NCBI GenBank assembly: GCA_907165135.1
Contig: OU015569.1
Coordinates: 3,410,001 to 3,474,000, forward strand
Length of the DNA stretch: 64,000 nt
Origin: Oikopleura dioica
Taxonomy: Eukaryota; Animalia; Chordata
Direction of reading: 5' to 3'
This document shows, in pieces, positions 4,264 through 50,225 of the stretch; position 1 is the stretch's first letter; each line of letters opens with the position of its first letter. Under the pieces are notes generated by a model, which made no database searches, was not told the DNA's origin, and saw only the letters and a program-made list of their open reading frames with translations. A program made the translations under genes and the position numbers.

Positions 4264-4651
4264 GGAAATTGATTTTATTCAGGTTTCATATTTTTCGACC
4301 AAGACATCCTTTTTTAGGATCAACGTGAAGATGCCGGACTTTCTGGATGTCTTCTGACCTCAAACTCGTTTTTCGAGAACGGTTGATCGTCGTTGGAAGT
4401 CCTGGAAGTTCTTCAACGTGAAGATGCCTCGTCGTTGATCTTCGCCGACGATGGCGCCAACCGGCTAAATGAGAAGTGTTAGTTTCTGTCGCAGACTCCT
4501 AAGTGAATGTTATTTAAATTTAGACTGCGTGTGACTCAGACTGCGTAAAAAAGTTAGTCTAAATTTTGTACTGCTTATTCTAATCAACAAAGTCTTACCT
4601 GGATTTATGCTCTTTTCGGACTTTCAAACTTCAAAAGCTGAAGTGATGACT
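4264..4651 (-). ncRNA. Small two-exon TCTAGA-promoter transcript, copy A (putative ncRNA)
   Basis: TCTAGA at 4683-4688, TCAGT initiator at about 4651, GT-AG intron 4465-4598 with CTAAC branch point, 3' motif with AATAAA at 4264-4283. No conserved ORF. Confidence 0.55.
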
Positions 4652-4921
4652 GAATAAAAACATCTCTTTTGCCTGCGACTATTCTAGAAACGAGTGAAAA
4701 CGTTGTTTATTATCCGAGAACTATTCATTTTCTATATCTTTTATTCAATTTAGCAGAACTTAGCAGTCAAAATACCAAATGATAATTTCAAAAAAATTGC
4801 ATGGCCGGAAATCCTTAAAAAACTGAAAGTGCAGTTTTTATCAGCTCGTTGAGACGAGTTGAACGATGGGAATGAAGATGACGGCGATGGAGAGGAAGCT
4901 CATCAGCCAAACACGATTTTC

Positions 4922-5691
4922 TTAGGCGTTCAAGACTTGGACGTAGCCTTTTCGGCGACCGTCGGCACTCTAAAATCGGTTTTAGAGCCAGAATGCGTAT
5001 GTTATTATTAGACATTAAAATAAGCTACATTAATATTTTGCTAGTAGATTATTCATTATGTTAGATTAAATTTGTTAAACAAGTGTGATACAATTATCGA
5101 AACAAAATTGTTACTTACTTCGACCGCGGTTACGAATTCGATTTTTTTTCCTAGGTTGTGAGCCTGGCAGTGAAAGCCACACTTGTTGCATTTCGGCGAG
5201 AGCCAGCTGAACATGCTTTGGCACCACTGGTCTGTGACCTTGGCTTGCTCGAAGATGTTCAAGCGGCATGGGATATCGCGCCATGGTGCGATGGGTTCCT
5301 TGATTTCAGTAAGTGAAGAAACTAATGCATTCGTTGAAGACTTACCCCATTCTGGATCCGGAATTGGTCTTGGCAGCTGTAAATGAATCCCAAAATGGCA
5401 GTGTGATGCTCCGGGTCCTAAAAAATAATTAACTTTCAATTTCGAGTTCAGAAAACTCACGTCAATAAGTGGGCAGTTAGCTGCAACATCGAAGACGACG
5501 CGGTTGGGTGCTTTCTCTTCGATTTTGATGAAATTGGCCGTTTTCAAAGAGATGGAATCGGCGAAAAAGAACGCTGTAATATCTCGAGGAGATTTTTCTG
5601 TTGAAATTCGGGGCACCCCGAAAATCCATGGGTGGACGGCGTTTGGGTTCGGCAAGTTGATCACACCAAACTCAAACTTTAAACCCGGCAT
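4922..5691 (-). CDS. Unknown protein of about 205 aa, two exons
   Basis: ORF from 5691 splices at GTAAGT (about 5118) to TTTTAG (about 4970) and ends SADGRRKGYVQVLNA*. TATAAAA at about 5745-5751. Contains a C-x2-C-x2-H-C-x2-H patch. Confidence 0.6.
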
Positions 5692-6090
5692 GACTCTCTT
5701 GGAGATTGACTTCTGGAGTGAGCTGCGTTCGTAAGTTGTTGTCTTTTTATACCCTCAAAATTGCGTGGCAGTTTTTTGAGCCATTGTTAACCAATAAGTG
5801 TGTGCAATAAGTACTCTAGGGCTCCACCATCTCTCCAGATTGATCAACTTTATAAGAACAACCGTTTTGCGCGCCAAGAAGGGAAAGCTTTCCTCTTTGA
5901 TTTGCGCAATCCCGCGTCAGATCTAAGACTCAATGTTGAAGACTTCAACTTGAGGTCCTATACTTTTATAAACCAAATTGCATCCATTATGGAATCCCGA
6001 ATTTTAACCTGGAATGCGATAAAAAGAGACGATTCGTTAAAACTATCAAGTATTATTTTCTTGAATAGTTTTATTATAATTGGGATTGAT

Positions 6091-6392
6091 GGAAATTGAT
6101 TTTATTCAGGTTTCATATTTTTCGATCAAGACATCCTTTTCAGGATCAGGGTGAAGATGCCGGACTTCTTGGATGTATTCTGACCTCAAACTCGTTTTTC
6201 GAGCAAGGTTGATCGTCGTTGGAAGTCCTGGAAGTTCTTCAAGGTGAAGATACCTCGTCGATGATCTTTGACGACTTCGTCGCCAGCCGGCTAAATGAAA
6301 AGTGTTAGTTTCTGTTGCAGACTGCTACAAAGTCTCACCTTGACTTTCGCTCTTTTCGGACCTTCAAACTTCGTGAAAGTGAAGTGAGGACT
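6091..6392 (-). ncRNA. Small two-exon TCTAGA-promoter transcript, copy B (paralogue of copy A)
   Basis: 6021-6392 aligns closely with 4193-4651. TCTAGA at 6425-6430, intron 6291-6338, 3' motif at 6091-6110. Confidence 0.55.
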
Positions 6393-6541
6393 GCGCGGAA
6401 AACAACTAGCTTGGAAACACGTGTTCTAGAGAAAATCTCCTTTTTTTAAAGAACTAGGAGACCTAGTACAGTATTGAGAGTGGGTTCTCATGTGATTCTA
6501 ATTGACTTATTTCATAGCGTTTCTTTTATAATAATTGGAAA

Positions 6542-8933
6542 ATGACGAATGGATCAGCAAAGTCACTGATGATCCTCGTGGCTCATATTAGCGCGATGGC
6601 GAGTGCCTTATGGCGAGTGTCAATTTGAAATGAAAAAGCGGAATATTTCCCACTCCCAAGTAATGAAACCTATCAAATACTGGGGCACTCTGCAGACGGA
6701 CAACTAGAGAACCACTTCGACAATTTATCATGGAAACATTTTTGAAGACGAATCGCACTTTAGAGACAATGTGCTTCTGCCAAGGGGTTCAAAATAATCC
6801 TATAACTGCTTCTAAATGGATCAACGATAATAATTAGATTGCTTTACTAAAAAACAACCCCTTTTTCGCTACGAAATCTATCCACCCGAAAGCCTGGTTA
6901 CGGACGACGATTGGATGGACATGGATTTCGGCGAATTCAATTCAATAGATTTGGGCCCTGAATTCCATCAAGAGCTTGATGATGCGAGTCCGATGACTGC
7001 GTACAAACGCTTCTTCATAATTGCCTACTACATCATTCTCATTATTGGAATTCCAGGAAACATGTTTGTCCTTGTTATGGTAAAATTTAAGCCGCTCAAT
7101 CCACAGGAGAGTTTCTTCTAGTCCTAGTCCGTTTCTGACGACTCTTTTGAGAGAAACTTTGAGAATGCATTTCTTCTGACAAATTTGTCCGTCTCCAGTT
7201 TAATTCTGCTAATAAGTCTTCCTCTAAAAATTGCCCTTTTAAACAGTAGAGATAATTTTAACCACACAGCGATGGGCTTCTTTTTTTTAGCGAGTATAAA
7301 CTAGCACTCATTTCTTCGAAGCCCAGTCAGTTCCAGAATGGCTTTCGTCGAAAATCGGCACAGCGAAAAATACTATGATAAATAATGGCTTGTGCAAGTT
7401 TTATTTGGGACATACTGTTCTGTGCCTTTTGGCGACTCTTCTAACAATCGTAGCAGGTTGCTTTAAGAAATAGAAATCATTTTCATTTAATCATATTTTA
7501 GTCGCTGCTGACAGATTCATAGCAGTGAGAACAACGAAGAATATCATCCTCAGGTTCTTATTATGAAAAATTTGTGTGAAGCCCATTTATCAGACAAAAA
7601 CGAGCGAGCTGGTTTTTGGCGTTGTCAGGAGCCATTTGGCTGATTTCGTTGTTCATCACCACTCCAGTGTTTTACTTTTCGCTTGTAGAAGACAATCGCT
7701 GCCAAACGGTGTGGATTCTGGAATCGGAAGTAACCGCTTAATTTCCCAAAAATCAAGGCTTATTTTTCGACCATAGGAACAATGCGAGCAGTATATGTCA
7801 GAGCCATTTGAAGGAAAGCACGTCTCTGAGCTGTGTAAGAAAAAGAATACGCTGTCAACTCACAACACTTGCGAGGCGAATCATACAGATATTGAAAAAC
7901 TCTACTCTTTATTCTGCCTTGGTGGCTTTATATTATTGGTGAATACTATTTTAATTCTCGGGAAAGGTAATCTAGTCTAGCCGATGCTCGCTGTTCCAAT
8001 GCTATATTACTGCTTCTTCAGCCGTTTCAAAGAGCACACTATGGAAATAAGTACTCGCAGAATAGCAGCGATGCTCTATCTTATTCTTTAGACGGTTTAA
8101 GTCAGAGCAAACCCAATCAAGTAAACGACCGAACTTCTGAAGTGAAGAGAAACGTTATCGCCCTCTCAGTTTCAGGAAAAGGATGATCACTTGTTTTTTC
8201 GTTGAATTTGTAATTAGTGATTATTTCGACTAACAGTTGCTTTTACTTGGATACCGTTTCTGGTATTTCACCTGATCCGATTCCTGGGACCGCTCGTTTC
8301 TTATCAAATCAACAAGACTGCATGTGACATGTTCGGGTAGATTCAAATTGATTTCGCAAAGGCCGAATTTTTAAGAATGGCCACTACGCTACTGCTATAT
8401 CTAAGCTGCCTTGTCAACCCCTTACTGTATACCTGCTTCGGCTCAACTGTGAGAAAGAAATTAGGTAATAAGTCATGGGGACTTACAGCTTGAGCGTACA
8501 AACGACAACTTACCTTTTTAAGTGCGCATCGTTCGATATAGTTTTTATCAGGGAAGAGGATTAAGGATCTCGAGAATGTGCTTATCGATTTTCTAAAACT
8601 ATAGTGCACTATTCGCGACGTAAAGTCAACCATCGCTTCGTCAAACATAAGCTCGCCTATGCCCACAACATCCTTTAACTTCCACTCGATTCGCCTCAAG
8701 TCACTCAGGAAACTTTCCAGCAATGCTCAAGAATAATAATATTATTCAATGTCCATCCTTTGTCGAAAATAATTGAAGAGAACGAGGCGCCAGAGGAAGA
8801 CAACGTCGAATGAAGCGAGACTCCTGGCGGAACAACACCATTTCCATCTCCGAATCAGTTTCGGACTCAGGTTTGGTATTTACGCGTTTTGAAATTCGCA
8901 ATTTAAAATTCAGACAACAAAAGTATCAGCTGA
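6542..8933 (+). CDS. Class A (rhodopsin-like) peptide-type GPCR
   Basis: TM1 GIPGN, TM2 LTNLSVSSL, TM3 C...AADRF, TM7 LVNPLLY. The apparent stop at 8811 is probably a 1-nt homopolymer error; the last exon would end at 8933. Confidence 0.85.
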
Positions 8934-9378
8934 AGCGAGGTTCTATTCGCTGTTCACTTTGTTCAATGTTGGTTGGATTTATTTGAAGAAAATGTACACA
9001 AAAATAAAGCTATTGAATAGAATTGAACGAAATTAATAAACAGTCTCAAATTCAAAAAGTGACCGTCCCTCTCCAAGTACTAAGTGACAGAATTCGAAAA
9101 ATAACGGCAAAGGGTTCGACAGTAAAAACATTAAATTTTAAAGAATTAGGGTTGCGATAAAGGCCTCGTGAAAAGTTCGGGCATAAATATATAGAACGGG
9201 GTATGATAATCAATGAATTGAAGGATTCGACTGCTTCTCGACTTTTTATCTGGCCGTAAACAAGAAGGCGCTTCTGGTTAAAAATTATTTGTCAGTTTGA
9301 GATTGGGATATTTTTGAAGAGAGAAAGTGTGCTTTTTGTGTGGGTATTATGTTTTAAATTTGGTCGTCCTTGGCGTTT

Positions 9379-9994
9379 TCAAGCTTTGTCTCCCTTAGTA
9401 TATTCTCCGTCGTCTTTTTTCCTGTGGCGGATGAAGGCGATAGCACCGACAACAACGAAGAGCGCCGCCACGGCGATCCCGGCGTACATTATGACACTGT
9501 AGTCCTCGGAACCTGCATTCTCGGGCTCGTCCTTGACGTTCTGAAAATTACCGTTTTTATGTGAATAAATGTGAATGTTTAATTTTTGGATAGCGTTTGA
9601 AGGCATTGCCTGGTTGAAAGCAATTTACAATTGTCCCTCCTTTTATTCAAAAAGAGGTGATTTTATGGCGCATTTGATTTGAAATGTTAGATTGATAAGC
9701 TAAGCACATGCTTGGGAAAGTTTAAGCCAGCTGTATTACTGTATTTAGTGTTGTCAGACTCTCTTCTGTTGCGTCGTGGCTTTTCGGTTGCAAAAACTAT
9801 CCATGTACAAATAAAAATCATCCAAGATCCGAGTTGAAGGTATAAAAACGATTACTTACTGGGATAGAAGGACCAAAGTCGCCGGAGCCGGAGCCTTCGA
9901 AGTCTTCGTCGTCGTTGTCGTACTGTGCTTGTGCGGTTTGGTAGAGCATCGAGGAGAGTAGTGCAAGGTCTCTAGTTCGGCGGTTCATATTCAT
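9379..9994 (-). CDS. Minimal syndecan-like heparan sulfate proteoglycan (about 100 aa)
   Basis: Acidic DDEDFEGSGSGD GAG-attachment site, one TM helix and C1-like RHRKKDDGEY. GT-AG intron at about 9541-9859. Confidence 0.7.
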
Positions 9995-12900
9995 CGACAA
10001 TTTTTTCGCGTTTTCAATTTCTCACTCTGAATGGAGAATTCGTCAGATTGGCCTTATTTTATTTGACTTAGGCAGGTTTAGAAAGGGCACGCGCAGCGGA
10101 GGTCCCGTTGCCTCTCCCCGTTTCTCTCAAGGTCAGAGTGACCTCACGCACGATCTTTCACAGGATATATAAATTAGCGCCATTAAGTATACAAGGACAG
10201 GGCAGCTCGAAGAATAGCAACTTCTGCGATTATTATCCGGCCCAGACCTTAGGATTAATTATGGGAAGCTGGCAGCTGCTGCTCTCTCTACTGATGATGC
10301 AATAAAGACTTGTATCTAACCAGCAGCCATTAAATTGTTGTCAGAGTCTCTCAATAAACGGGCGATGATTTAGAACTTCTCTTATAGAAAATTCCATCGC
10401 GATGGGGCCGCGTCACTTTTTATATTTACGATTCGCTGACTAAATTTTCTCTCGAGCTCTCTTCTCTCCACGCTGCAGCGATATTAGCATTATCTTTTCT
10501 CAATTAAATTCCGGCCTCTAATCGGCGGAAATAAAGCCCTCCACGCTCTCACAAGCGATTACTGTAAACGAAGGCGTAATTATCTCAAATCTCAAAAGCG
10601 TATTTTCCGAGAGGCGACCCCCCACGGTGAGAACACTGTTTTTATGAGCGCGAGCTAGTGGAATTCATACTTCCATAAAAATTCATCATAATTACCCTCT
10701 CGCAGCTCTTTGCTGACAAGATCAGACGCCAATTAAAGCTTTCATGTTTTTCGATTTAAAATTGTCAAGATTCTCTGTCGCAGCGAACAGAAAAGTGGTT
10801 TTGTTTGAAAAACGAATCTGCAAAACGTTAATTGTTCAAATAGAGCGCGCATGAAATGGATTCTCGCCATTTTTATCAAGTTCCTGGCTCGCTTCTTTCT
10901 CTCTCTCTCTTTTTATGAAAGTGTGTCTCGTTGTGCTCGCAGCACAATCATGTTCATATTTATGTTAAATCACACGAAAAGAAAGTCAGCTTCAATTGAG
11001 GGGAAAACGACTTGTGAGTCGAATTCAAACATAGACGGCAGATATTGTCGTTTCTCCTCTATGATTGCACTTAAAAATTTAAACTTCAAAGTTAGAATTT
11101 CGCGATTCCCTTTGAAGAGGCTAAATCGATAGAATTACCCAAAACTTGATTTTTATCTTGCGTCCCTTGAGACTCTCAAGTTGAGAGGCTTTCATCCTGC
11201 TCTGAGAAATAAACGAGTAAAGGAGATATTCTGATTGTGTTCGCCAAAGGGCCGCTATCGACTCTCTCTCTCTCTCTGTTTCCCTCCCTCACGTCTCCCA
11301 TGTTCGTTATCGGCTACTATAGTGTATTCTCAAAAAAATAAACTCTGCGATAAGAAAACCGGAGAGCGACTTGACTCGTGTACGTGAGCCCGCACTGGCA
11401 CTGTCCTTGGCCGAGCGAAACACCACGCAGCTTTTTCTTTTTACTTTTTTATTACTAATTAAATTCTCGCAATTAATTTATTTCCCTGACAGCCGACGTG
11501 ATTATAGAAATTCCCAAGTCGCGTTTCCTCTTTTATCTTTATTTTTGAAACAGCCTAAATTCTTTGAAAAACATTTTAACCGACAATTTAAAACTGATTC
11601 TCTGCTTTAATCTACGCGACGCTGAAGGGATTAAGCTGAATTATTAACGAGTCTATTTTCATTTATAACTTTTACCCTTCTAAAATTAATCAGATGCGCC
11701 TGTTGAAAAATACATGGCCCTACTTCAGATACAGATCACCTCCGAGCCCCTCTAAATATTTAACAAGAAAGGTATAATTTTAAAAAAGCAGCTAGCTCAA
11801 AAAGACCTCATGACTAGCGATGGAAAATTAAAAGACAGATGGGCCTGTGAATCAGCAAATGATGTTCTGTTGCCTCGTGACAAGTGTTTGAATAAGTACG
11901 ATAAAATTGTAAAAACGCCCTGAATAAGCACTTTTGTATAACGAGCTGTCAAAATCTGACTGAGTTCGATTTCTTTACTCTGTGTGAGTAAATTCTCACA
12001 TAAATTCTTGTCCCCTTCAACTTATTCGAATCATTAACTCAGTGGCCTTGTACCACAAGCTAAATCGATTCGTATTTCGAAACTATTTCAAAGAGAATGG
12101 AAAACTCTTCGTGTGTATTCTCTTTTCAAAAAAGTGAAAATATTTCTTTTGCAAAATTAGCAAGGTCGACGAACAACTTTCGTTGAATTTTTCATGGTTT
12201 GATTTGGTCGGAGTTCGCGCACGCGCATGAGCTTCAGCTCAAGCGGCTCAGCCGTTGGCGCTCCGCCAGTCTTTCGCTGAAAAAAAACGAAGAAAAAACC
12301 GTAAAAATTATGTGGTCACGAATTACGACGTTTCTCAGCCACGTGCGGGGTTAATTACAATCCGTGCATGTGTAAATATACAGTCGTCTTATGAAGATAC
12401 TCTTTGATCTCTCCGGCGAGTTTCCAAGGACTGCTCCGTCCAGCAAGGATAGATCTTATTATAAAAATAAATAGTCATCTTATGTTTCTCTTAAGGGTTC
12501 CGTGATGTCGTGTGTGAACTGATGTAGATGGCCTGTGATAAATGGCCCTTCCCGTCACAAGTCAACTGTAGTTTCTTCGCATAAACGACTAACTACTCCC
12601 TACAGTAACTTTTTCTTCCAAGTGCCAGGACTATCCATTTACAGTTCCTTATCTGTAAATAGCAAGCTAGCAGTTTACTCGTCCAGAGAGTAGTCAAAGA
12701 CTCTGATGGCATTTTTTCTCTTGGCTGATATTGTGAAAGAAGATGATCGGCTGCACAAACTAAAATTCCCTCCGCCAATTAATAATTAACGAATTATTAA
12801 ATGTAGAATCTGTTTGCCCTGGCCAGCTGTCATTCTATTCACCGCAAAGAAAATCCAGCAGGGGCCATTTATTTTTATCAGTGTCGATTGTATCAGAAAT

Positions 12901-13627
12901 TTGAGGAAGAAGTGGAAAGGGAATACAATCCGACGGAAAACTACATCGATCTCACACTCGTTCTTCACTTTCGAACTTATTTCTCTCTTAAAAATGATTA
13001 TCAACAATTAAAAAATAAAGAGATTGGATTTTATTTTTTGCTTGTTTCATGCGAAAATTCTCGTGGTTTTCTGCCAGATGCTTGAAAACGGAGCTCATTC
13101 GGATTCAAAGTCAACGCCGGCTCAGGTACCTGATCTCATCAATATCTCAGGAATCACTAACCAACTCTTAGTAATCAATTGTTGGTGATAGAGTGCACTA
13201 CTCTCGTTCTTTTCATTGCAGAGTTCCAAAAGCATCGCATCTTAGTAAAAAGCAGTGAGTTCTCGAAAGTAAATTTTCTAAGCAAGAAAAAAATTGGAAC
13301 TCTTCCGAAAGTCTACTTGAGCTACCTTATCTTAGCGAGAAATTGAGCTCTGCCAAATTTAATTCATCCTGTGCTCTTATTATTTTCTCCTGCATTAAAT
13401 TCAATCTTCAATAAAAAATATTTGAAATCTCTTATTTTTCAAAGGCTCCCACTGAGCTACTGCTGCTGAAGCTGACATTTATCGAAACTAGAAATCGCAA
13501 GTTATCAGATGAACGCAGCGGGGAACGGGCACTACTTCAAAGATTAGGAATAGTGCACGATGCGCCCTCTTTCGACAAGGATTTGAATAAAAACGTCCGG
13601 CGGATTTTCATTTCACAAGATCGCAAA

Positions 13628-14272
13628 ATGACTGACAAGCCAAAATCTCCAGCTACAGAAGATCCTCCCATCTCGCTTACGGCAACCCAAGCAAGACCGT
13701 CGAATCGCGTCATCAGAAGTACTTTGCTGAAGGCTTTGGAAACAGATCCGACGACTGTTGGCCGAAGTGAAGTCGAGCACGATCGCGCCGATCGCTTCAA
13801 ACTAGAACGACTTGCTCTTCCCGACGGAAATCCCACTTCCTATCTTCTCTGCCGCCATTTTGCTTGCGAGGAGAGGCCCTTCAAGGACAAGGTAAAAATG
13901 TGCCATATTTTCTCTAGTCCATAACTTTTAAAGGTGTTCCTTGGAATAGGAAAAAGTGGCAAAGTGACAAATTCGCAGGTCAAGAATCACATGGAAATAG
14001 GCTATCATGGAGGTACCATGGAGCAACTTTCCGAGGCTGCGGCAGAAGTATGCATCAGTCTGCGACTTCCGCCGACACTCTTTTCCTCGGATAGCTTTAA
14101 GAGACTCACTGAGTTTCTAAGCGACGGATACTTTCCAGGCGGCATCAACGAAGAAGACATTCGAGGACACTTCGAGTAAGCTTTATTTATTTTAGTCAAA
14201 TTCCGAATAAACCCATATTTTAGGCAAAAGGGCTACGATCCTGAATGGGAATCCGAAGAAGAAATGAACTAA
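13628..14272 (+). CDS. BED-finger plus hAT dimerisation-domain-like protein (transposase-derived, no DDE domain)
   Basis: Three exons with GT-AG introns. YLLCRHFAC...VKNHMEIGYH is followed by AAAEVCISLRLPPTLFSSDSFKRLTEFL. Confidence 0.6.
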
Positions 14273-14758
14273 GGACAATAACTGCTATCGGAGACAGTAA
14301 CGATTCCAAGATCTTCCCATACTTATTACAAAACTGTGCTTTTTAACGAAACTGATAATAAAATAAAATCTGAAACCAAATATCATCGTTTGCACATCGT
14401 TTGCTTCTTACAGACTCAATATCATGAAAAAATGCGGGCTTATTTAAAATGCGCGTGAAAATTAAAATGTCGGTTGAGAAATGTTTTCGAGAGCGCTGTT
14501 GTGATACGCATCAGAAAAATCTCGAAAAGCAAACGGCCGAAGACGCGCGCGAGGAGCCGGTCCTTCCTCACTCCCAAAAGAGACGCTGTCGAGGTAACTG
14601 CTTTTTCAATTTTTTTGAATTTTTTGAAATTTCGAGTTTTTCTTCTGGCTTCCAGAGATTAGCTTGATAGAAATAGAGGATCACTTCTAATAGCGGCTAG
14701 AGACTGTTCGTGTCCAATTTTTTATTTAGTTCTGTCAATCAACTTGAACAAGGTGAAA

Positions 14759-35398: not shown

Positions 35399-35504
35399 TC
35401 TTAAACACGAAATCAAAGACGATTGCTTGCGTTAAATACAATTACAGTTATATTGCACAGTCCCGTAAATGATAGCGGAAGGAAAAAAAGTTATAAGGAT
35501 AGAG

Positions 35505-38128: not shown

Positions 38129-38256
38129 TCTTTATAAGAACACAATTATTGAGGGAAATGAATTCGAGTAATCTATTCGAGAAGCATACAGAAAAAATAT
38201 AAGGAAAGAGGCTTTGAAGAAGAGTTTTGGGGAAGGCGAGAATGAAAATACAGTAG

Positions 38257-40172
38257 TTATTCGTCCGTCGCAGAGAGAAGTGGCTGGTCATCGGATGCTT
38301 GGCTATCCGCCGAGGCAACACAGAAGCAATTGTTGAAAGAAAAACTTTGAGGGTCGCCTGGACACGAGTCCTCTTCAGAAGTACTGGCATCCAGCGCTTT
38401 TTGAATTCCTCTCGAATGAAGCCGATGTCCATTATTTTTCTAGGCAATAATTTTGAATGAAAGCTTGATTGAATATCATTACCTTGATAGTTTCATAAGA
38501 ATCCATCACGACGGAGATAAAAAGGGACAAAACTGTGTAAATAAAGAGGCAAATGAAAGAGTAAAGGTAAATCTGGGAGAAAAAAGACGGTCCACCGGGT
38601 TCGAGCATTCGGAATGTTGCAAACATGTCATCGCCATTGAGCAACGAGAAGAGAGTTTGAGAAGTAATGATTGGATTTCGGAACTTGGAATTGAACGGGC
38701 CAAGCACTAGCCATCCGCAAACGACGTAGCCAAAGTAGAGTGTCAGCGCACAAGTTAGGAACTTGAAAACTTTTGGCATCGCGTGCGACAAAGTAAGAAC
38801 TGTTAAAAGGATAGCACAATTATCATAAAAAACTTTAAATTCGCCTTAAATAAAATAATGAGAGCTTTCTATCCTTCCTAAAATGTTGTAACCGCGGAAG
38901 TAGCCAAGATATCGCAAAATTCCTGAGTAACAAAGAAGAGCTCCGAGACCGAGGAAAATGCAGCTTATTTGGAAATCATCGACAGAAGGCAACTGTCGAG
39001 TTTGAACGTCCAGTTTTAGACCAGTTCCAATGATAACAAATACGTCAGATACTAAATAAAAGTGATTCTTGGAGTCTAAAGATATTTTTTACCGAGCATT
39101 AGAATGTACCAGCCATCTACGAACTCGTTGCAATCAGAAAGTGTCGCTTGTTCATTGAATTTCTGCATGTACCAAGAGGAGAATTGCAAGCGCAAAAGTT
39201 GCGCCCGGAAGAGCGACCTGATTACCAACATTGTAGATAAAATCGACACGACAAGGACGAGAAAATCTAAAGAACAGAATATCTTGGATGATAGATCAAG
39301 ATACACGTATACCAAGAAGAATTATTGGGGAGGCCGAGATGGCTTCTCGATCGTCGACGCCAGTCATTGTTTGATTGAGAACAACATCCGCCAGTCCGGA
39401 GTGATCAGAATTGTCGATCTTTAGCATGTAGGAGAGGGCATAATCTCGCTTGGTCCGCTTGTTGACGACTTCGTTATGGTGGGAGATATTTAGATCGACT
39501 CTCATGACAACAATTTCATGAAGAATCAGATCGAGTTCAATATCTGCTTCCGTGGTCGGAACTGAAAATATTTTAGTAATAAAGCAGTGATAATTTCTGT
39601 CGATACTTTTAGTCGAGAATTCTTCACCGGGCGTGAAGTTTGTTAGCGTGTAAGATTCGAAAGGTCCCTCTAATTGCTGCAGTAATATTGTGACATTGCT
39701 GATTCCACTTATTTCAGCAAGAGAATCAGTTCTTTTTGCGATTGAGAAAATTATTCCACGATCATTTCGGCCTTCCAAGTGAGTATTATTTTCGACAACC
39801 GTTCCTAAGAGTGTGGACTCCTTTTCGAAATAAAAAGATTTGCTTATAAAACTCAGATTTCGTTGTAATCGTACTCGTGAAGGGTGATTCGGGGAAGGAT
39901 GGGTTTCCACCAGAAGGGTTCACTATTCTCCACACACTTTTTCGCATGTCGCTTTTGAACTCGACATTGTCTATTGGAAAGAATCAAAACTGGAAGGCTC
40001 TAAATCAACGCGTACCTTGAGATACTTTTCCAAAATTATAGATTTGGATAGTAATGGCAATGATTTTAATAATTTGGAGAGCGAGTTTGAAAGGCTTTCT
40101 GCCATGTTGCCATTTCTGGCACGGAGACCAAAAATATTTTCTTACTTTCCACGGGACGGACCCATCGTTCAT
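38257..40172 (-). CDS. MCOLN: Mucolipin (TRPML) channel
   Basis: KYFWSPCQKW..GRKPFKLALQ, GWLVLGP, LFSLLNGDDMFATF, C-terminal dileucine DDQPLL. Confidence 0.93.
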
Positions 40173-40293
40173 TCTTTCAAGAAACTTTATGGAATACCGT
40201 TTTTATTACAGATTTTGGTTATGAGGTAAACATTGGATCGAGTTTGAAGAAAAAGGCACAGCGCGGTGGAAAAATAGTTACAGATGCAATGCT

Positions 40294-40721
40294 TTAAAAT
40301 TTCATTTCGATGTCGAGAAGTTTTATGTCGAAAACAAGAGTGGCGTTGCTTGGAATTACACCAGGATACCCATGGTCGCTAAAAAGGACCCATAAAAAAT
40401 TTTGGAGTGACTCTTTTTTACCCGTAAGCATAATCAGAACTACAGATCAATTTCGCCCTTTCGCCAAGGCTCATTTGAGAGATTCCTTCGTCCCATCCTC
40501 TTATCACTGAACGGAATGTGTCACTCTTGACCCGAACATAATATTAAAACATTACCTTTTCCGAGGCCTAGTTGAAACTTGAATGGCTCTTCCCTTTTTC
40601 TCGAGGAGTCAAAAACCTTTCCATCGACCAGCATGCCTGTATAATGGACACTTACGTAGGAACCTATTGGCGGAAAGTTGGTTCCGTCCCCTGCCGAAAT
40701 AGTCTCAACTCGAACCACCAT
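40294..40721 (-). CDS. FKBP1: FKBP12-type prolyl isomerase
   Basis: [44 protein letters not shown]. Confidence 0.95.
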
Positions 40722-40765
40722 TCTTGAAAAAAAATATTAATAATAATTATTCTAATTCGAATTTC

Positions 40766-42797
40766 CTATTTCGAAAGAATTTTTATCGCTTTGCCAACAG
40801 CAATCGTATCAGAACTGTAGCGCAGAACTATTCTGCTCAATTCCTTGACCTCATCCCATAGTTCTATACAAATTTCGGAAGCCAGAGTAATTTCCATCTC
40901 AGCAAAGTCGCCTGATTTCAACATCTAGCATTAATTAAAGATAATGCAGCGACTGGTAAACTAACCTTTGGCCGCATCCTTGCTGTTGCACCATTTCTGT
41001 CCAAAAGCCTTACAAGTTTCTTTATGTGACCACAAGTTAAGTTTCCACGCGAGAAGAATGTAATGGGAAGGCCTGGAGTGATTGGAATTGCATTCTTTCC
41101 TTTGATTATTTTTGCTTGCACAAGAACTGTTGCCGATTTTGGAATTGATAAGATGTATGAGCTCAGCATGCTCACAGGCCTGATCTGTTCGAGTGCTGAA
41201 AATACATTTTCCCAAAATGACGAAGCGATTTCTCACTAACTTGTTCCCTTCAAGACGACTTCGCCAATATCCCCAGCCATTAAGGCTTTCACAGGCGGCT
41301 CGACAATATCGTTCACAATGGCTGTTTCCATCGTAGGGCACACTTTTAATTTCGTTCCAATCGCCAAACATCCGCACTCGACACGAATTCGACAGAAAAT
41401 TCCCTTTGGTTCTTCACTTATTTCAACCACGGACGCCCGCAGAGGCCGAGCTCTCAAAGCTGATCTATCTGGAGGTGTGATTGTATTGAAAGACTCTCAT
41501 ACCAGGATTTTGAAAGTAAAATTCAAAAATATTTATATCTAAAGATTATATCTACTTGGATTCTTTCTCCATTTTCCGTAATCCGATCCTAGAAGTGTTG
41601 GTCCCGTGAACCAAGGGCATTCTGTGCCATGGCTATGCTGAACCCCGACACCTTCAAGAAATTGTTATTTTCAATCTTCAAAAAATGAATACCTGATAAG
41701 GCAGAAATTGGAATAAATGTGACTTTTTTCTTGACATCATACGATGCTGATTTCAGGAAGTCAGTTAGTTGGCTCTTAATTTCGTCGAATCTTGACTTAT
41801 CGTAGCCAATTTGGTCGAGTTTGTTGATGGCCACAATCAGTTTGTCGCAGCCCAAAGCTCTCGCAATTGTGATATGCTCTTTTGTCTGGCCTCCTCTAGC
41901 AAAGCCTGCTTCAAACTTATCTCCAGTCGCGTCTATCACCACCATCGCCACATCAGCTGCCGCAGCTCCTTTGGAAATCATGGCTGGCACGAAGTCGCGA
42001 TGGCCCGGTGCGTCTACTTTTGTTATTAAATTGTTAGATCAGACAGTTGTTAGTTTTTATGAATAGATATAAATGATAGACCATTAAAATTATTTAATAA
42101 CGCTTTCCCCAGAAGAGCCAAGTTATATGACTCTAGCTCTATAATCTCGGCACTTCCTACATCAATTGTGACTCCACGTTTTCTTTCTGTTTCTGTCGAG
42201 TCCATCGCGTAAGCCAGCGCAAAGGAGCTTTTTGAATTGATGTCCGCCAGTTTCTGCAATCCGCGCGTTGTTTTCTCGTTTAGATTTCCAGAGGCAACGC
42301 TCAGCTGCCCGACTAGAGTCGATTTTCCGGAGTCTACATGTCCAATCACACACATGTAGACGTTTGGTTTCTCGCTTTCGATGCGAGCTTTCACTTCAGC
42401 CTCAATGTTGACGATCGAAAGCTTCTTTGAAATGAGCTCGATCTCGCGTGCCTCTGAGGCCGATTTCTCCTGCTTAGGGTCTTTCTTCGGAGTGTTCGTT
42501 TTCGTTTGTTTCGGAGCATTTATTTGCTCTCCAACGAATATCAATCATGAAAATAGAAAAGATATAATGATTTTGATTTATTCCCTGTGAAATATGTGAA
42601 AGAACTTTTGTAATTCGTTTCTTTTTCGGCTGCTGATTCGGGGTCTTTTTCGCTGCTTGTTTTGGTTTTGGTGGCGCCTTTGGGGCGACATACCCATCGT
42701 ATCCGTCGTAATCTTCATCATAGTAGTCATCGTCATAATCGTCGTACTCGTCATAATACTCGTCGACCATGCCCTGAACATGCCGATGCCTAGACAT
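40766..42797 (-). CDS. HBS1L: HBS1-like translational GTPase
   Basis: N-terminal MSRHRHV...DEYYD, GHVDSGKSTL, ERKRGVTID, DAPGHRDF, NKLD. Confidence 0.9.
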
Positions 42798-42887
42798 TCT
42801 TAAAAGAAATCCTCATCAATTACCGATTTTGAGAACTTTCCCATGGACTTTAGAATTTTTGAACTTTTCAAAGAATTATCTAGGGAT

Positions 42888-43728
42888 TCACTTTCTCCTC
42901 CAGTCTCTGTTCGACACACTTTCCATCGTCATAAGCTCCTTATAAATGAAAAGTAATAGACTTTTGAAAGTATTTTAATCTTACGGATGGAAGATCATCC
43001 CAATCATCCTCGTTAACTGGCTCTTCGACTTTTTGTTGCTTCGTCGAGGGTTGCTGTTCTGCTGGCTCCGTTTTGACAGTGTCATTAGTTTTTGGCAGTG
43101 GCGGGTTTGACGTTGCTGGAGCTCCATTTGAAAATTGCTTTGGTTCACGCATTTTGTGCTTATAGGGATTCATATTAGGCAGACTATCACGGACTGGCTG
43201 ATCGTACGACTTTCTCTTTTTCTGAAAGAACGAATAATTCAAAAAGGCGAGGGCGAGGCGCTTACATTGATACGCTCAGGTACTAGGTGCTTTGTTTGAT
43301 CTTGGATATTCTTTGAAAGCGGATGTTTGGCTGTTCGATTCGGTCGCACTTGTTTCGGGACAAACTGGGCACCGGCGATTGGGTTGAGAATATTCAAAGT
43401 TGGATTCGTCGCACCTAGGTCGACTGGCTTTAGTAATGGACCGTCGTCTTGGCTTGCATCCATTGGCTCCGATTTAATGTTCTCTTCTTTCTGAAAAAAT
43501 AGTGACAATTCTTCTAAGCTTGAATAAACTAACAATTTCTTGTTCGAACTTGATTTCTTCTTCTACTTGAGTTTTAACAGGATGAGAATCCGGCATTGAC
43601 GGCAGATTTTTCAGCATTTTATCGTGCTCTGCTCTAAATTGCTGGGCTGTCCTTTCCCGTCCCCGGTTTTGCATAGCATTCGTCGCTAATTCCAGAGCAT
43701 TTTGCATATGATTAGGCTCAGGCTGGGA
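42888..43728 (-). CDS. Low-complexity coding exons: a separate gene or the 3' extension of RNF113A
   Basis: Spliceable ORFs 43474-43767, 43239-43535 and 42940-43242. The last exon ends RDWRRK*. Confidence 0.5.
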
Positions 43729-43841
43729 GAATTCTTCTATCGAAAAGGTTACGAAACTGATACACATAGACTATGTCACATAGTAGTCGATGTTATTTTT
43801 TGCTAGTTTGATATTTTTTTAATGTGTGTAGTGTCTGCAAC

Positions 43842-45449
43842 CTAAACTGGATTATATTCCGCGGGATCGCGAATAACTCCTTCGTCGCTATCCACTTCTG
43901 AGCTGTCAGTAAACACAGGAGGTTGATAGCCCGGTTCGATCTCATTTCTGATAGTTTTTTCCTTTTGCTTTTTAAAATTGTTTTGAAGATCTTCTGGTTC
44001 GTAGGTTTTGAGAAGGTGTTTCTTCTTCACGCCTGGCGCAACTTCTCCTTCAGAATCTGAGGAACTTTCAATCAGCGCATCTGCTGGTAAACGCGTTTCT
44101 GTAGCAATTGCCTTTCCGAGCATGATATCTCGCTCTAGCTGTTCTTTCTTCAGCCTTTCTTCTTCTCGTAGTCTTTCGAGCTCTATCAACTCTTCTTGCG
44201 TCTTCTCTGGCGAATCTGGTATTTCATTGTCAATTTCCATTTCTCCGGCTTCGTCATCATCGTTTTCACCGTCCGAATTTTCGGATTCCGATTCTAGACA
44301 ATTATTACTCCAACTAAGCTGTACTAGACAAACCTTTTGCGACAATTCTGTTCTCCCAATGCGACATTTTCACGTCTTTGATATCGAGCTTGAGCAATTT
44401 AGCGACAATATTCTTTGCCATGTTGAAGATACCCTTCGTGTTCTTTTGGCAAACAAAACATCTTTTCGTCTTTTTGAAGTGAGCGAGAGCGCATGCTTCG
44501 CAAAAGTAGTGCTCGCAGAGTGTCAGCACTGGCTTCTGGAAGTGATTTCGACAAATGATGCATTTGAATGGAAGCTCTTCTTCGTCGGAGGATACTTCCC
44601 AGTTTTCCTCTTCCGTTTTTCCGTAGATACCCAATTCCTTTGATGAGTTATTAACCTGCTCGATTACGGAGTTATAACCAAAATCACAGATTTTGTTATT
44701 CAATAAAACGAGAAACTTTCAAACCCAGGCCTGTTCACGCTCAATCATCCAACCAAGTTTGTAGTCGCCTCTATCGTGAATGAATTTACACGAGTCACCG
44801 AATCCACAGAAGCCCGTTTCTTTGTAATCTTTACAGATGCAAGGATCGTGGTCGATTCGAATGGAAGCGCGGAAGAAGGAATTCCCTCGGACAGGCCCTT
44901 TCACTGCGAGTGATTCTTTCGTGTGCGCATCTGAGCGGATTTTGTGGTAATTTCGGTATCCACCTTTTCCACGGTAGACATTATCGTCCAGCGTTCCATC
45001 CTTTCAAGCGGATAGAAAGACTCCTTCTACTTTTTCAGAAAGATAAATTTCCTTGTTCTATCCGCTCCCTGAAGACCTTTTTGAATCTCTTCGTCTCGTT
45101 TCGTCTTTTCTTTGATATCGACAATGGGACCAAGATCAGCAGCTTCCTGCGTTGCGATATCTTGTCTGTCTTGCGTCGGAGCAGTCGTCATCGTAGATTT
45201 GTACTAAAATAGGTGAATAAGATATTTTGGAGAAAGAGGGTCACCCTGTACCTTTTTGTTGATAAGTGCTCGCATGTCATCTTCGTCGTCACTTTTAGCA
45301 GCGTAGACGCGTTTACTCGTCTGCTTGTTCAATCCCGACCGGTCCCGCTTCTCGATTCTTACGATTTCCGTCGATTCGTCTTCTTCTGAACTTTCTTGTC
45401 TTCGTTGGCGCCGTACGCCTCGATTTTTACGCTTTTTCGACGCAAACAT
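43842..45449 (-). CDS. RNF113A: RNF113A/Cwc24 (CCCH + RING) with acidic C-terminal extension
   Basis: [27 protein letters not shown] and [29 protein letters not shown]. Confidence 0.92.
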
Positions 45450-45720
45450 TCTTGATTTATATTTTATAATAAATTATACAATTATTACTTACTTTTCAGT
45501 ATAAATTATATACCGTATAATACGGTATTATCAATACTGCTGAATAATAAATCACTCCAAGATTTAAAATATTTCTCTTTTTTCAACAAAGAAAAGCTCT
45601 GAATAAATGAAAAGGTTTTGAAAGAATGCTGGTGTTGGTGGTGGAGTTGAAATAAAGCGAGAGGAATAGATGATCCCTGAACAAGCGCTATTGGCCGCTG
45701 AGAATTTAGGAGAGTACGCG

Positions 45721-46263
45721 GGAGCACACTCAAATGCTCGGCGCGCTCATTTGCTCAGGCGCTCGAATGCTCGGGACGCTCTTTTGCACGGACACGAGCG
45801 AAAGAGTGCCCAAGCGAATGAGCGTTTGATTTAATTGGTCGACGATAAAAAATGTTTTACAGGACCTAAACCATGACTTAGTGATGTCAATTCTTAGAGT
45901 TTTATCGAAATAAATTCGGAACAATTTCCAAAACACGAAATCATCGGGAAGAAATGAAAATGGACATTATTTTTTTTTCAATAAGTCATCAAGTGTTATG
46001 TAATAATTGTCCAGAATTGTTAAGATGATCATACAATGAGTCATTTTAGCGTATATTTAGAAAATACAGCATTTAGAGTGATAATACGCTGATGATCACT
46101 TTCAATTGTTTATTTTCGGAGAAATATTCTTGTGCTAATTTTCGACCAATTAAATCAAACGCTCATTCGCTTTGGACACTCTTTCGCTCGTGTCCGAGCA
46201 AAAGAGCGTCCGAGCATTTGAGCGCCCGAGCAAATGAGCGCGCCGAGCATTTGAGTGTGCTCC
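45721..46263. mobile_element. Mutator-like (MULE) MITE
   Basis: About 120-bp TIRs starting GGAGCACACTC and a perfect 9-bp TSD GAGTACGCG (45712-45720, 46264-46272). Confidence 0.92.
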
Positions 46264-46343
46264 GAGTACGCGCGCGCCCGTCCGAGCGCCGCTGCTCTTT
46301 TTTCGTCCTCGCTGAGAGAAACTCTCGAAACTCGCCTGAGGCC

Positions 46344-49300
46344 ATGTTCGGCTTTCTCAGGAAAGGGAAGCAGGAGACAGGAATGGATTAGAACGGTTAG
46401 AGTCGCGATTATTTCCATTACTTATCAATTTGAGATGAAAGAAATCCGAAAAAAGTGTCGCCTGCGGATGTTAAATTGGAGGCGTTCCAAGAACATTGGC
46501 GGCAAATCAAGCCTGTTCTTGAGAATACTGGCCCCTGGAGTGTGGGAAATCGAACTCGCGAGTCAATCGAGAGTGGGGTCATCTCTGTCCGCGCGAATGT
46601 TAACTCGCTGACGCACTTGCTGGTGGAAGAGCTGCGCACGCAAAGCCAACTTGGGCCCCTGCTCGAATTCACCTTCGAAGAGAAGATTTTCAAGCGACTG
46701 TGTGTCTGGGCTAGACAGCCCGGAATCCAGCAAGAGCAGCGTATAATCGACCAGCTTCGAATGTACGAAATGCTCATTTCCGAATCGGACCGCTGTATTC
46801 TTCACGACAAGCCGCTACTCGAGCCGATGTTTTCTCTTCTGGCGCATTATCAGACCGGTGCCGAGAACCTGGAACTCGATCAGATCGTTTCTCAGCTCAA
46901 TCAGAGCCTTTGTCTCTGGATCGGCCGAGACCCGACGCTCCTGCCTGTCTTCTTTTGTTGTGGACAGGAAGACCAGGGCAAGACTGGCTTCTTGCTGTTT
47001 TCTATGCTCGTCCAACACGTCTACCGAGATGGGCCTGTTGGAGATCGCGCAAGAGACTCAATGCTACTTATTTTCAGCTACAGTTCAAACTTCAACTCAA
47101 ATCAACCGCTTTTTAATCAGAAAAAGTGACGTAGACATAGATTGTAGTTTTGACTCAAAACTTTTGAGTATAAACTCAAATCCGTTAGAATTGCAAAGAA
47201 ATTGATTTTATTCAGGAAGTTATAAATTGGAACTCTTCCTCGCTTTTTGCGTTGATGAGGAGGGCAAAGGACTTTTCAGTACTCATTTGATGCACGTCCT
47301 TCGTACTCGATGACCGGCTGGTCTTCTGAAAATAGCTTTATTTCGCATTAGTCGATTTACAACAAACTTACTTCATGTTCTGGGCTTCGCGGACGTTCGG
47401 AAACCGAAGTCTGACCAGATCTTAGTAAAACGCCCTCATAACAACTTCGATTCTAGAGAACCGGGGCAAAAGAAAGAAAATTTTGAACTGAGTTTACAGC
47501 CATTCTGCTCGCTGCGCTGAAGTGTCGGAGTACATCGCAAATAACTCAAACTTCTGTCCCGTGCTTGCTGCTGGTCTTTCCGGACTCTACAGCTCTCTTC
47601 CAAGACGATTAGAATTTCGCGGCGACGAGTTTTGCTCGCTCGAGCGTCATCACTGGGACAATGTGCCCACCCTTCGCAGTTTTATGCAATCGCTGCTTTT
47701 CATCAACTCGGTTTGCGAGCTCGCCGAGCAACAAGTTTGCGAGTCGCTGCTTTCCTACCTACACTCGGGCTTTCTCGTTCCCGTTCTGGCACCTTCTCTT
47801 CACAAGCCAAACCAGGAAGAAACGCTCTGCTCCATCGCCTACCTTGATCTCTTCGTCCGCTCTGTCACTTCCGAGCCTCTTCTTAAACTCCTCCTACGTT
47901 TCATCGTTCTCCATGAATACGAAGGGGTCCCTCTTCTTGACACGCTCACTCAAACTCTGGGTAACTATTCGCGTCTCGCTTCTTTGCTTAAGACAACCTA
48001 GGTTCTAATCATCGTGAATGTCTCGCCGCACTGTCTCTTTTCTCTACTCTAATCTCTATCCAATGTGAGGACCTCATGTTCCAGCTTATTTTCCGCTACC
48101 TCATTCCAGGATCGCACATGCTCTGGACCCAAAGAGGGCTCATCCGACAAAATGAAAATCTCGTTATCTCCGCAGAAAAGTAAAACCCCCTTTTGTTTTT
48201 TCGATTAATAGATAAAATTTTAGATTTTTGAATTTAACACCGAAAGAAAGCTTCAAGGGTAAGAATTCTGGAACGAACTTCCGAATCACTGAAGACTTGT
48301 TTTTGTCTGCTGACGAAACGGCTGAAATCGACGAAGCTGATGAAGAGCTTGTCGCTACAGATCTTGCTCTTGTCGGCGCCGTTCCTGGTGCTATTGACCA
48401 AATTCCTTTCTCTTACATGGATTATTTGGAAGGTAAAGGGTTGCACGTATTCGTTAATAATTTACTTAACGCTCAGACGCAAGCGCTAGAATTGCCGAGT
48501 CACGGTTATCCTGCGCAACTTGGCTCTACGATTACGACGGAATCGATCCTCCCCCGAATTTCATCTCAGAGAACACTGATCTCTTCACGCCACTGCACGG
48601 CCTCGTCGCCACACGAACTCATGAAGCACTCGTTAACTTTGACATCGAAAACAACGATTTACCTTCGCTGGACGAGCTCGGCATCGAATCTATAACTTCG
48701 AAGCCCCAGTCATTTCAAAGAGCGAACTCGACTTCAAATCAAGCGAAAGTTTTTGAAAAAGTAGAAAGGCCACGAAACAACAAAGTAAAAACTGAAGTCG
48801 ACGACTTTTATCGCTCACTAATGAATAGCGAAGGTAGGGCTCGAAAATATTTTTGAATCAAATCAGTGTACTGTGGTTTTCGCAAAAAAGAGCTCATGGA
48901 AAGAAATATCAAGTGTCAATATGAAAGAGTGCGACGATCTGGACCTGTCGGTAGACCTTAAAGATGCCGAAGAAAGCTTCATGTCTGACATCACAGCTGT
49001 CGAAGCACAAATGAACTCGTCACTCGGGGAAGCCAATTCTGAAGTCGAATCGTTTGAACTTCCATCAACAGCTGAAACTGTTGAGGAGCTAGAAACAGTG
49101 TGCGAAGAGAACGCAAATGAAAGATCTATTTTGGAACTGGGTCATCTTGAAGAACAATTGACGACTCTTGGCGATCACTTTCTCGATGCACAGGTAGAGG
49201 CGACTCTTGTCCAGTAAATTTATCAACTTCTAGGCGAGTACGACCATCCATGTACCAATCAAAAAGGCTGGAACGCCATTTCTGGGCCCTTTTCTGTCAA

Positions 49301-50225
49301 CTCTATTTGGAAGGCTGGAACAAATGCCCACCAATTCCTTATATTTAAACTTAATGCTCACTGGTGTCGTCACTAAGCTTTGTTCGATGCCTCAGCCTCT
49401 ACTCCGAGGCTTCCTGTTAGATACGCGCGTAGTCTTTCAGCCTGGAGTACCAACGCTCTTCTCAGTTCTCACAAAAGTCAAGGGAAAGCTGAATGCTTTT
49501 GCGGTCTCTTGTGCAGACTTTAACTCGCTCTGTGCCCGTGCGAATCAATTCTTGCTCCAGCGGGAAGAAGATCCGATTATCATCGAAGACGATAAGGGCA
49601 GCAGTACTCCTTTTGACTTAAAGAAGTTCGAAAATGTCATAAAAGGAAAAAAAGACAAAGCTGAAAAGGTAACGCATCCTGCAATAATTGAGACACAACT
49701 TCAACATAAATATTGATTATTCAATCATATTTCAATCAAATTTATGTGGGATTCTTTTTGGGAAATTGATTTTATTCAGGTCTATGAATAAGATTGACAA
49801 TGCTTGGTCCAATCTTTGGACGAAGCTGCATGAAACAGATTATCAGGCATCATTTCAGTGCATGGGTGCTCCACCGCACAGGGAGATCGACAGCAGTGGA
49901 TGTAAATTCTTAAATTTTAATTACTCTTTTGCGTCGCAAACTTTCAAACTTACCATAAGAACCGGTGTTATCGGACTTTTCAAAGACCAAAGTCTGCGAT
50001 ATTTCATTCCTTTTGGCCCCAAAATAACTTTTATTCTAGAAAAATAAGATATTTTTCTAATTTCTGTTTTAGTTTATAAAAGCTGCTCAACTGAATCTGG
50101 CGATGCGAGAGAAGCATTCGTCTGACCCGCTCCGATTGAAGAACGGGATCTTCGCTACTGTGATACTGCGCGAATTCGCGAAAGAGCTAGCTGCGCTCGC
50201 TCATGAACACGCTATCCTTTACTAA
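46344..50225 (+). CDS. FHIP1: FTS- and Hook-interacting protein FHIP1 (FAM160A)
   Basis: HVYRDGPVGDRARDSMLL, NFCPVLAAGLSGLYSSLP, GFLVPVLAPSL, GPFLSTLF..LEQMPTNSLYLNL, EFAKELAALAHEH. Confidence 0.9.
47079..47492. mobile_element. TIR-bounded insertion functioning as a FHIP1 intron
   Basis: CAGTTCAAA (47081-47089) / TTTGAACTG (47482-47490), with flanking 8-bp near-direct repeats TTTTCAGC / TTTACAGC. Confidence 0.5.
47198..47420 (-). ncRNA. Small two-exon TCTAGA-promoter transcript, copy C (antisense in a FHIP1 intron)
   Basis: TCTAGA at 47452-47457, intron 47326-47371 (GTAAGT..CTAAT..TTTCAG), 3' motif at 47198-47216. Confidence 0.55.
49761..50002 (-). ncRNA. Small two-exon TCTAGA-promoter transcript, copy D (antisense in a FHIP1 intron)
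   Basis: TCTAGA at 50035-50040, intron 49909-49953, 3' motif at 49761-49780. Confidence 0.55.

Follow-up and report, generated by a model that had tools for sequence, protein, structure and literature searches.

Four short minus-strand units, A to D, lie in the window, the whole 64-kb stretch of Oikopleura dioica DNA that was analysed, where an earlier note on this DNA had placed them. In each unit TCTAGA is followed by a predicted first exon containing GTCCG, a short predicted intron, and a second exon ending in a 19-nt 3' box. Unit A comprises the TCTAGA male core-promoter element (4683-4688; motif role from PMC6389100), a predicted exon 1 of 46 nt that resembles the spliced leader (SL) (4599-4644; GTCCG 4621-4617), a predicted intron of 134 nt (4465-4598) with an acceptor common to B, or of 58 nt with a nearer AG, and exon 2 (4265-4464; about 89% identity to B), while a downstream spacer hairpin (4245-4211; segment z -2.5) and a U-rich/TGCA element lie within 4185-4264. 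Unit B has its TCTAGA at 6425-6430, a predicted exon 1 of 47 nt (6339-6385; GTCCG 6361-6357), a predicted GT-AG intron of 48 nt (6291-6338), and exon 2 at 6092-6290. In unit C, TCTAGA (47452-47457), a predicted exon 1 of 41 nt (47372-47412; GTCCG 47394-47390), a predicted intron of 46 nt (47326-47371) and exon 2 (47198-47325; fold z -3.05) are followed by a region (47101-47197) with a hairpin (47183-47139) and a GCGGTTG-type distal element (47109-47101). Unit D repeats this order with TCTAGA (50035-50040), a predicted exon 1 of 42 nt (49954-49995; GTCCG 49976-49972), a predicted intron of 45 nt (49909-49953), exon 2 (49762-49908; fold z -2.75) and a downstream region (49679-49761) with a hairpin (49747-49693) and a TGCAG element.

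TCTAGA and GTCCG are 67, 69, 63 and 64 nt apart, start to start, in A, B, C and D, respectively, and initiator-like A's stand at +44/+45 from TCTAGA in all four. The 19-mer that the earlier note described as an identical 3' end is exact in each unit (4265-4283, 6092-6110, 47198-47216 and 49762-49780); with up to three mismatches it has five matches in the window compared to 0.08 expected, and the six remaining TCTAGA sites of the window lack the family grammar. The micro-ORFs of the four units likewise read as had been stated.

Units C and D lie antisense within two introns of a plus-strand host gene of the FHIP1/FAM160 family (46455-50200; PF10257, PF19314), where D fills about 49669-50072. 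Unit C is contained in a 422-bp insertion in an FHIP1 coding exon (47079-47500, plus strand), which is flanked by a CAGC duplication, has 9-bp inverted ends (CAGTTCAAA/TTTGAACTG) and could be removed without loss of the reading frame, either as a GT-AG intron (47083-47492) or as a GC-AG intron. Three further genomic matches have inverted ends like these, and the unit positions at FHIP1 are not conserved in other appendicularians. The intron holding C is a gained insertion, and unit C is a putative case of a family gene that gives its host exon a new intron. No second copy of its exon 2 was found in the genome.

A dispersed and X-enriched gene family

Genome-wide in O. dioica Okinawa, the core of the 3' box has 85 matches, compared to 0 in the control. 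An upstream TCTAGA...GTCC[GA]-N16-18-GT accompanies 76 of these 85 sites, at a control chance rate of ~1e-4 per site; five further sites are variants or split by transposons, bringing the grammar to 81/85. The strict promoter-exon pattern has 93 genome matches and one in the control. Counting the 81 sites with a canonical 3' box and others with variant boxes, O. dioica is thus predicted to have about 100 tiny non-coding genes with fixed ends and a middle that differs from gene to gene. Unit-level statistics below cover 78 units; about 23 promoter-only loci lie outside this sequence reading. TSS and acceptor positions were set by our own rules, and the corresponding peaks are therefore partly shaped by them.

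The family is concentrated on the X: 64 of the 85 3' box sites are on the X-specific scaffold, which makes up 20% of the genome (p 1e-27), none is on the Y, and autosomes and pseudo-autosomal sequence hold about one copy in four. The grammar is also conserved across lineages, in that two metagenome contigs from a divergent Oikopleura lineage, whose alignable (genic) parts are only 65-79% identical, have the same grammar with different payloads and carry TCTAGA even though the search pattern did not include it.

Male promoters of O. dioica have TCTAGA 40-50 nt before the TSS, with a median of 44 (PMC6389100), and not at the distance of about 35 bp given in the earlier note. In agreement with this median, an initiator-like A is at +42..+46 from TCTAGA in 68/78 units. 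From the published motif, we infer that TCTAGA at about -44 would activate the units in the spermatogenic testis. Of four RNA runs compared with 46900-50300 (3,401 letters), which come from another lineage or are too shallow, X1 covers the host gene only, and X2, X4 and X5 give 0-11 reads that are mostly divergent or partial; transcription and splicing of the units are predicted from the sequence, and the mechanism below is a proposal.

Predicted introns are ~47 nt long (mode 43-49, compared to a genome median of 49), with a T-rich AG at a mode of 43-49 nt past the donor and an AATAAA box beyond. Exon 2 falls into 54 unrelated types among the 78 units and is structured (fold z -1.85; 105 perfect short hairpins compared to 32), and it evolves as non-coding sequence: only 4/52 indels between paralogs are multiples of three, some of the one-base indels possibly being assembly errors. 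A coding reading of codon-like variation in exon 2 of A and B was rejected, as this variation sits in hairpin loops and the frame is broken between A and B. About 55 nt downstream of the 3' box is a spaced U-rich/TGCA element. Long downstream hairpins are present in 28/47 scored units, and the stems in exon 2 are mostly short. We also rejected the idea that a further intron, of a non-canonical kind, runs from the 3' box to a downstream TGCAG: close paralogs change TGCAG to TGCAT, and the element is therefore read as UGCA rather than as an acceptor.

Altogether, co-occurrence of the elements, absence of a conserved frame and the second lineage bear out the earlier proposal that short non-coding genes, alike at both ends but not in the middle and driven by a promoter of the male type, form a dispersed family. 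The SL-like exon 1, the X enrichment and the conserved elements downstream of the 19-mer go beyond that proposal. We found no earlier description of such a gene family in the literature, and a term search of PMC6389100 gave no mention of SL-like exons or of a non-coding family.

Exon 1 and the spliced leader

The SL gene of the same genome (SL sequence in PMC6883708) has a geometry equal to that of the family exon 1. O. dioica SL RNA genes share with the family a 40-nt first exon that starts with A, a 5' hairpin and a GTCCG that precedes a GT donor by 18 nt. Predicted family exons start with a +1 A and have a length mode of 40-41 nt; GTCCG is separated from the donor by 17 nt in 42 units and by 18 nt in 35 (77/78), the SL having 18. 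Thus the position -23..-19 noted earlier for GTCCG holds in A, B, C and D but not family-wide, where the spacer is 17 or 18 nt, and the motif GAA.GTCCG is not general, the fixed part being (R)GTCCG. The 5' half of exon 1 resembles the SL (6.95 vs 4.1 matches of 15, p ~0.006), and a 5' hairpin is favored across the family (z -0.95 compared to about -0.06 in three controls), although individual hairpins are weak, with z ~0.1 in units A and D. Exon 1 is not identical or nearly identical to the SL: the likeness consists of GTCCG and the partial 5' match, and the spacer of 17-18 nt has no sequence similarity to the SL.

SL gene loci form a set separate from the family loci and have the SL upstream region where the family has its TCTAGA promoter; unlike them, the family has a cis acceptor, a second exon and a poly(A) box. 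Moreover, the family exon 1 sequences are diverse and mostly X-linked, whereas SL copies are near-identical and often arranged in inverted pairs. On its predicted features, exon 1 is a genome-encoded imitation of the 40-nt spliced leader, and it probably derives from it.

About 80 first exons that are unrelated in other respects retain only the +1 A, the hairpin, GUCCG and the distance of 17-18 nt to the junction, apparently by selection. These features may be regarded as a natural mutagenesis of the leader that points to the part read by proteins. The exon junction complex is deposited at about that distance from a junction.

Possible functions and relation to known systems

At the level of the class, it is likely that we are dealing with about 100 non-coding RNA polymerase II mini-genes with an SL-imitating exon 1 and a fixed 3' box. 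The best overall explanation, which we hold to be evenly balanced against all others, is that they encode non-coding RNAs of the male germline that imitate mRNAs carrying the SL. In this model, a mini-gene activated in the testis by TCTAGA at about -44 would yield a capped RNA of ~150-300 nt, in which the SL-imitating exon 1 of 40-55 nt is cis-spliced, with removal of the ~47-nt intron, to an exon 2 that is non-coding and rich in hairpins. Its 3' end would be formed by cleavage and polyadenylation at the CUGAAUAAAAUCAAUUU box, the U-rich/UGCA element lying ~55 nt downstream. Both constant ends would serve as protein handles that give the RNA the look of an SL-bearing mRNA, while the middle would be constrained only to a compact, structured state. 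Acting as decoys or scaffolds, such RNAs might engage SL-recognizing factors for the cap, for export or for translation, in a testis where trans-splicing is often bypassed by the endogenous transcripts; trans-splice sites are excluded from many TCTAGA transcripts (PMC6389100). We regard this decoy or scaffold mechanism as plausible, if somewhat less so than the RNA identity itself. A pure decoy needs neither 54 payloads nor an X bias.

Among the alternatives, precursors of small guide RNAs (Argonaute-loaded and miRNA/siRNA- or piRNA-like), in which the ends are an entry ticket, the middle is the source of the guide and the setting is an X-linked conflict in the male germline, fare best but are unlikely. 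The 54 variable, fast-turning payloads, the X enrichment, the structured exon 2 and the presence of several Ago proteins in O. dioica fit this reading, but most hairpins, at 5-12 bp, are too short for Drosha/Dicer, Rfam gives no match for any unit, and exon 2 has no antisense match, low-complexity sequence aside, in the 346 kb of DNA compared. The piRNA-precursor part of the earlier interpretation is weakened by the expression of piwi, which at day 6 is found only in females and in the day-5 testis is confined to follicle cells (PMC4402516), by the short length of the predicted RNAs and by the lack of any other genomic match to unit C; the spliced, polyadenylated-type non-coding family of that interpretation is supported.

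Less probable still are cis-acting transcription units that, working like roX entry sites or through antisense interference, would control host genes or the male X in the testis. Such a role would account for the X bias and the absence from the Y, the more so as the testis X has a distinct chromatin and is dosage-compensated (PMC5240408), and C, D and a further unit, L108, are antisense in host introns. However, it leaves the SL-like exon and the quarter of copies off the X-specific scaffold unexplained, flank orientation has no clear antisense bias (a weak test), and the FHIP1 positions are not conserved.

That the units encode micropeptides, with the SL-like leader bringing ribosomes to short basic ORFs, appears improbable. 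An ATG is present in 69/78 predicted RNAs, several ORFs are K/R-rich and an SL-like leader would favor translation, but nine predicted RNAs have no ATG, the first ORFs mostly encode 1-35 aa with neither start position nor sequence in common, and frames break between paralogs of 90-98% identity. We give very little credence to male-specific, SL2-like alternative donors whose exon 1 is trans-spliced onto other mRNAs: exon 1 has the length and geometry of an SL, but the T-rich AG ~47 nt past the donor and the poly(A) box are unlike an SL gene, exon 1 varies too much in sequence to be a leader, and O. dioica has a single SL according to the literature (PMC7986045). Just as remote is a non-autonomous mobile element without host function, to which the unrelated locations of paralogs, their sharp borders near TCTCTAGA and TGCA, and the gained insertion at C would point, since the grammar occurs at 81/85 sites despite unrelated middles and persists across lineages, almost no decayed copies exist, promoter and intron are kept, no orphan copies with a poly(A) tail were observed (intronless retrocopies being judged solely from DNA around the 3' box), and 17 paralog pairs share no TIR or TSD. 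Helitron, SINE and shared-TIR readings are not supported, these pairs having no common termini (TIR/TSD, TC...CTRR, A-tail); among the copies, C alone has the 9-bp inverted ends.

Returning to RNAs that pose as SL-bearing mRNAs, we tentatively speculate that they form a new animal class of regulatory RNAs, made by about 100 X-concentrated male-germline mini-genes born from a spliced-leader gene, in which a fake leader and the 3' box are shown to the trans-splicing/translation machinery, the structured payload acts as guide or address, and cryptic species have the class in common but differ, through turnover, in its payloads and positions. The family would bear on roles of the spliced leader other than operon resolution, and it gives a concrete candidate for how X-linked genes may regulate the male germline of a chordate.

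The TCTAGA spermatogenesis promoters of O. dioica resemble the family in the motif and in its spacing of 40-50 nt to the initiator; 1391 male-specific clusters have been reported (PMC6389100), compared to ~100 loci with the full family grammar. In another related system, a genome-encoded 5' hairpin replaces the spliced leader on non-trans-spliced RNAs. There, structure alone imitates the leader, on protein-coding mRNAs, whereas the family also copies length, sequence motif and position of the splice junction, is non-coding and has a common 3' box. Mammalian pachytene piRNA genes and X-linked testis miRNA clusters similarly comprise ~100 testis loci with a shared promoter logic and fast-evolving non-coding content, but their precursors are kilobases long or contain hairpins of 60-70 nt. 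Finally, Drosophila roX RNAs are, like the RNAs predicted for the family, X-linked, male-type, spliced, polyadenylated and structured, with a short conserved 3' box, but they come from two somatic genes, whereas the family consists of ~100 germline-type mini-genes, a quarter of them off the X.

Size and grammar of the mini-gene family

The four minus-strand mini-genes that an earlier note had proposed in the window (units A to D, at 4264-4688, 6091-6430, 47198-47457 and 49761-50040) are present on re-reading with the layout it gave, namely a TCTAGA promoter motif, a predicted exon 1 with GTCCG, a GT donor and predicted short intron, exon 2, and a 19-mer 3' box containing AATAAA. Across the genome (64.28 Mb, 19 contigs), the 19-mer matches at 78 places when one mismatch is allowed, and 85 places match its 15-nt core exactly, with none in the control in either case. 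We retrieved and read the sequence around all 85 core sites, and the expected co-occurrence with upstream elements was borne out, 76 sites having TCTAGA, GTCC[GA] 61-88 nt downstream of it, and then a GT donor; of the other nine, four have no upstream part, three come close to the pattern as variants, and transposon-like insertions divide the remaining two. The GTCC[GA]-to-donor spacer is 17 or 18 nt in 77 of the 78 distinct units, a value not imposed by the pattern, since the search range was 14-23 nt. An independent promoter-exon pattern matched 93 places in the genome and one in the control. A second 3' box, CTGAAAATACAGTCGCAAC / CTGAAAATACAGTCGCAACTTTC, in which AATACA replaces AATAAA, has 11 exact genome matches (for example at loci L031, L033, L054 and L055); it is mostly autosomal, has CTGAA and CAA.TTTC in common with the main box, and is accompanied by a family-type exon 1 at all five loci read. 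Other units finish with a plain AATAAA. From these counts together, the family therefore totals about 100 loci.

Three units (L082/L019, L046/L029 and L075) are interrupted by insertions of ~0.5-4 kb, transposon-like in appearance, and at L027, L083 and L085 the 3' box is doubled in tandem, 50-51 nt apart. At L092:1105-1256, two tRNA genes occupy the interval between two convergent units. In the window, ORFs without a Pfam match flank unit A (1888-3762 and 5056-5691, both minus strand); the latter lies between units A and B and has a TATA-like element near 5750.

Insertion, spread and X linkage

Units C and D lie antisense within introns of an FHIP1/FAM160-family gene (46455..50200, plus strand). 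In two other appendicularian lineages the FHIP1 exon is uninterrupted at the site of C, and the D intron measures ~53 nt in one of the two, which indicates that both units are insertions and that unit C created a new intron in FHIP1. By comparison with these lineages, the insertion splitting the exon spans 422 bp (47079-47500), and its in-frame removal leaves two (GC donor) or four (GT donor) added codons; unit C may have travelled between MITE-like ends. Paralog similarity runs from just upstream of TCTCTAGA to just beyond TGCA, and no termini common to paralogs were found. The retention of promoter and intron indicates spread at the DNA level.

A single metagenome scan with the pattern GTCCG-GT-box found two contigs, both with TCTCTAGA at the expected distance although it was absent from the search pattern, and both with new payloads (the variable exon 2). 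Identity to the window's Okinawa lineage is 65-79% in their genes, which fits another O. dioica lineage; such lineages diverged ~25 Mya (PMC11067885). The genes beside the unit on one contig, L108, where it is antisense in a host intron, are X-linked in Okinawa, and an Okinawa unit lies ~1 kb from the orthologue of an L108 neighbour, at a position that is not the same. By elimination, the X-specific region is assigned to the window's contig (C2, 12.96 Mb) and the Y-specific region to C3. The X carries 64 of the 85 boxes (p 1e-27) and 59 of the 93 promoter-exon matches (p 1e-19), and the genome scans gave no family box or promoter match in the Y-specific region.

Exon 1, exon 2 and the 3' end

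TCTAGA is present in 72% of male-specific start clusters, 40-50 nt (median 44) upstream of the TSS (PMC6389100). An initiator-like A lies at +42..+46 in 68 of 78 units and, counted from it, exon 1 is most commonly 40-41 nt (28 units), reaching 67 nt with a longer 5' hairpin. The published O. dioica spliced leader (SL; PMC6883708) has exact matches to its 3' 25 nt at 53 genome places, and its 40-nt exon starts with A, has a 5' hairpin and carries GTCCG exactly 18 nt before the donor. In a non-redundant set of 22 short exons, the 5' half of exon 1 agrees with the SL at 6.95 of 15 free positions, as against 4.1 in shuffles (p 0.006), and the spacer between GTCCG and donor has no SL likeness in the same comparison. 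The TSS-to-GTCCG stretch folds at a mean z of -0.95 (controls -0.03 to -0.08), a family average that is weak in units A and D, and the 5' stems differ between subfamilies. We infer that exon 1 is an imitation of the SL, from which it probably descends. At L060-L067, the intron part of the SL RNA is without a U-run Sm site and is pyrimidine-rich with CT repeats.

The first T-rich AG mostly lies 43-49 nt past the donor and, because this fits the genome's median intron of 49 nt, the predicted intron is likely removed by cis-splicing. Exon 2 (~70-260 nt) falls into 54 unrelated groups, with a folding z of -1.85 versus -0.36 and 105 perfect short hairpins versus 32. No ORF is common to the predicted RNAs, and of 52 paralog indels just 4 have a length divisible by three, so that the earlier idea of a non-coding family stands; exon 2 is structured and non-coding. 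One frame in exon 2 of L091 and L092 resembles a PDZ-domain fragment (…KGLGFNI…), a hint that some payloads may derive from captured coding DNA.

Downstream of the 3' box, a U-rich tract ends in TGCA at a bimodal distance of ~54 or ~108 nt; a hairpin (mean z -2.9) is present in all 28 long-distance cases, and subtracting it gives back ~60 nt. An additional downstream element of GCGGTTGTTGTGTAGT-like sequence occurs exactly at five places in the genome, each 50-125 nt past a family box. The distal motifs GCTTAGATCAAGT and GTGTAGT, downstream of many units (for example L057, L014 and L018), may resemble the 5' part of U2 snRNA. The opposite strand of both boxes, the sense strand of the host gene where a copy sits in an intron, looks like a strong acceptor (…TTTTATTCAG/G and …TATTTTCAG), possibly by coincidence.

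Possible roles and comparison with known systems

At the level of sequence, the analysis establishes a grammar fixed at both ends, X bias, almost no decayed copies and persistence of the family across lineages, and with them selection for structure rather than code. We propose a model whereby the units would give testis RNAs resembling SL-bearing mRNAs, their expression, splicing and 3' ends being predicted. Because many TCTAGA transcripts exclude their own trans-splice site (PMC6389100), a leader encoded in cis would bring an RNA within reach of SL-reading factors, and the family RNAs might thus act as a decoy or scaffold. We favour this reading over all rivals, if tentatively; it leaves payload variety and X bias unaccounted for. 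That the units are small-RNA precursors, as the earlier note had suggested, is unlikely, with piwi absent from day-6 males (PMC4402516) and unit C without a second match in the genome. Cis regulation of the X is less probable again and the encoding of micropeptides more doubtful still, while we give least credence, equally, to alternative SL donors and to a selfish element.

Rfam gave no match, and the literature searched, which took in few of the subscription journals, yielded no description of the family. On the features compared, the family falls outside SL genes, coding genes and mobile elements alike.
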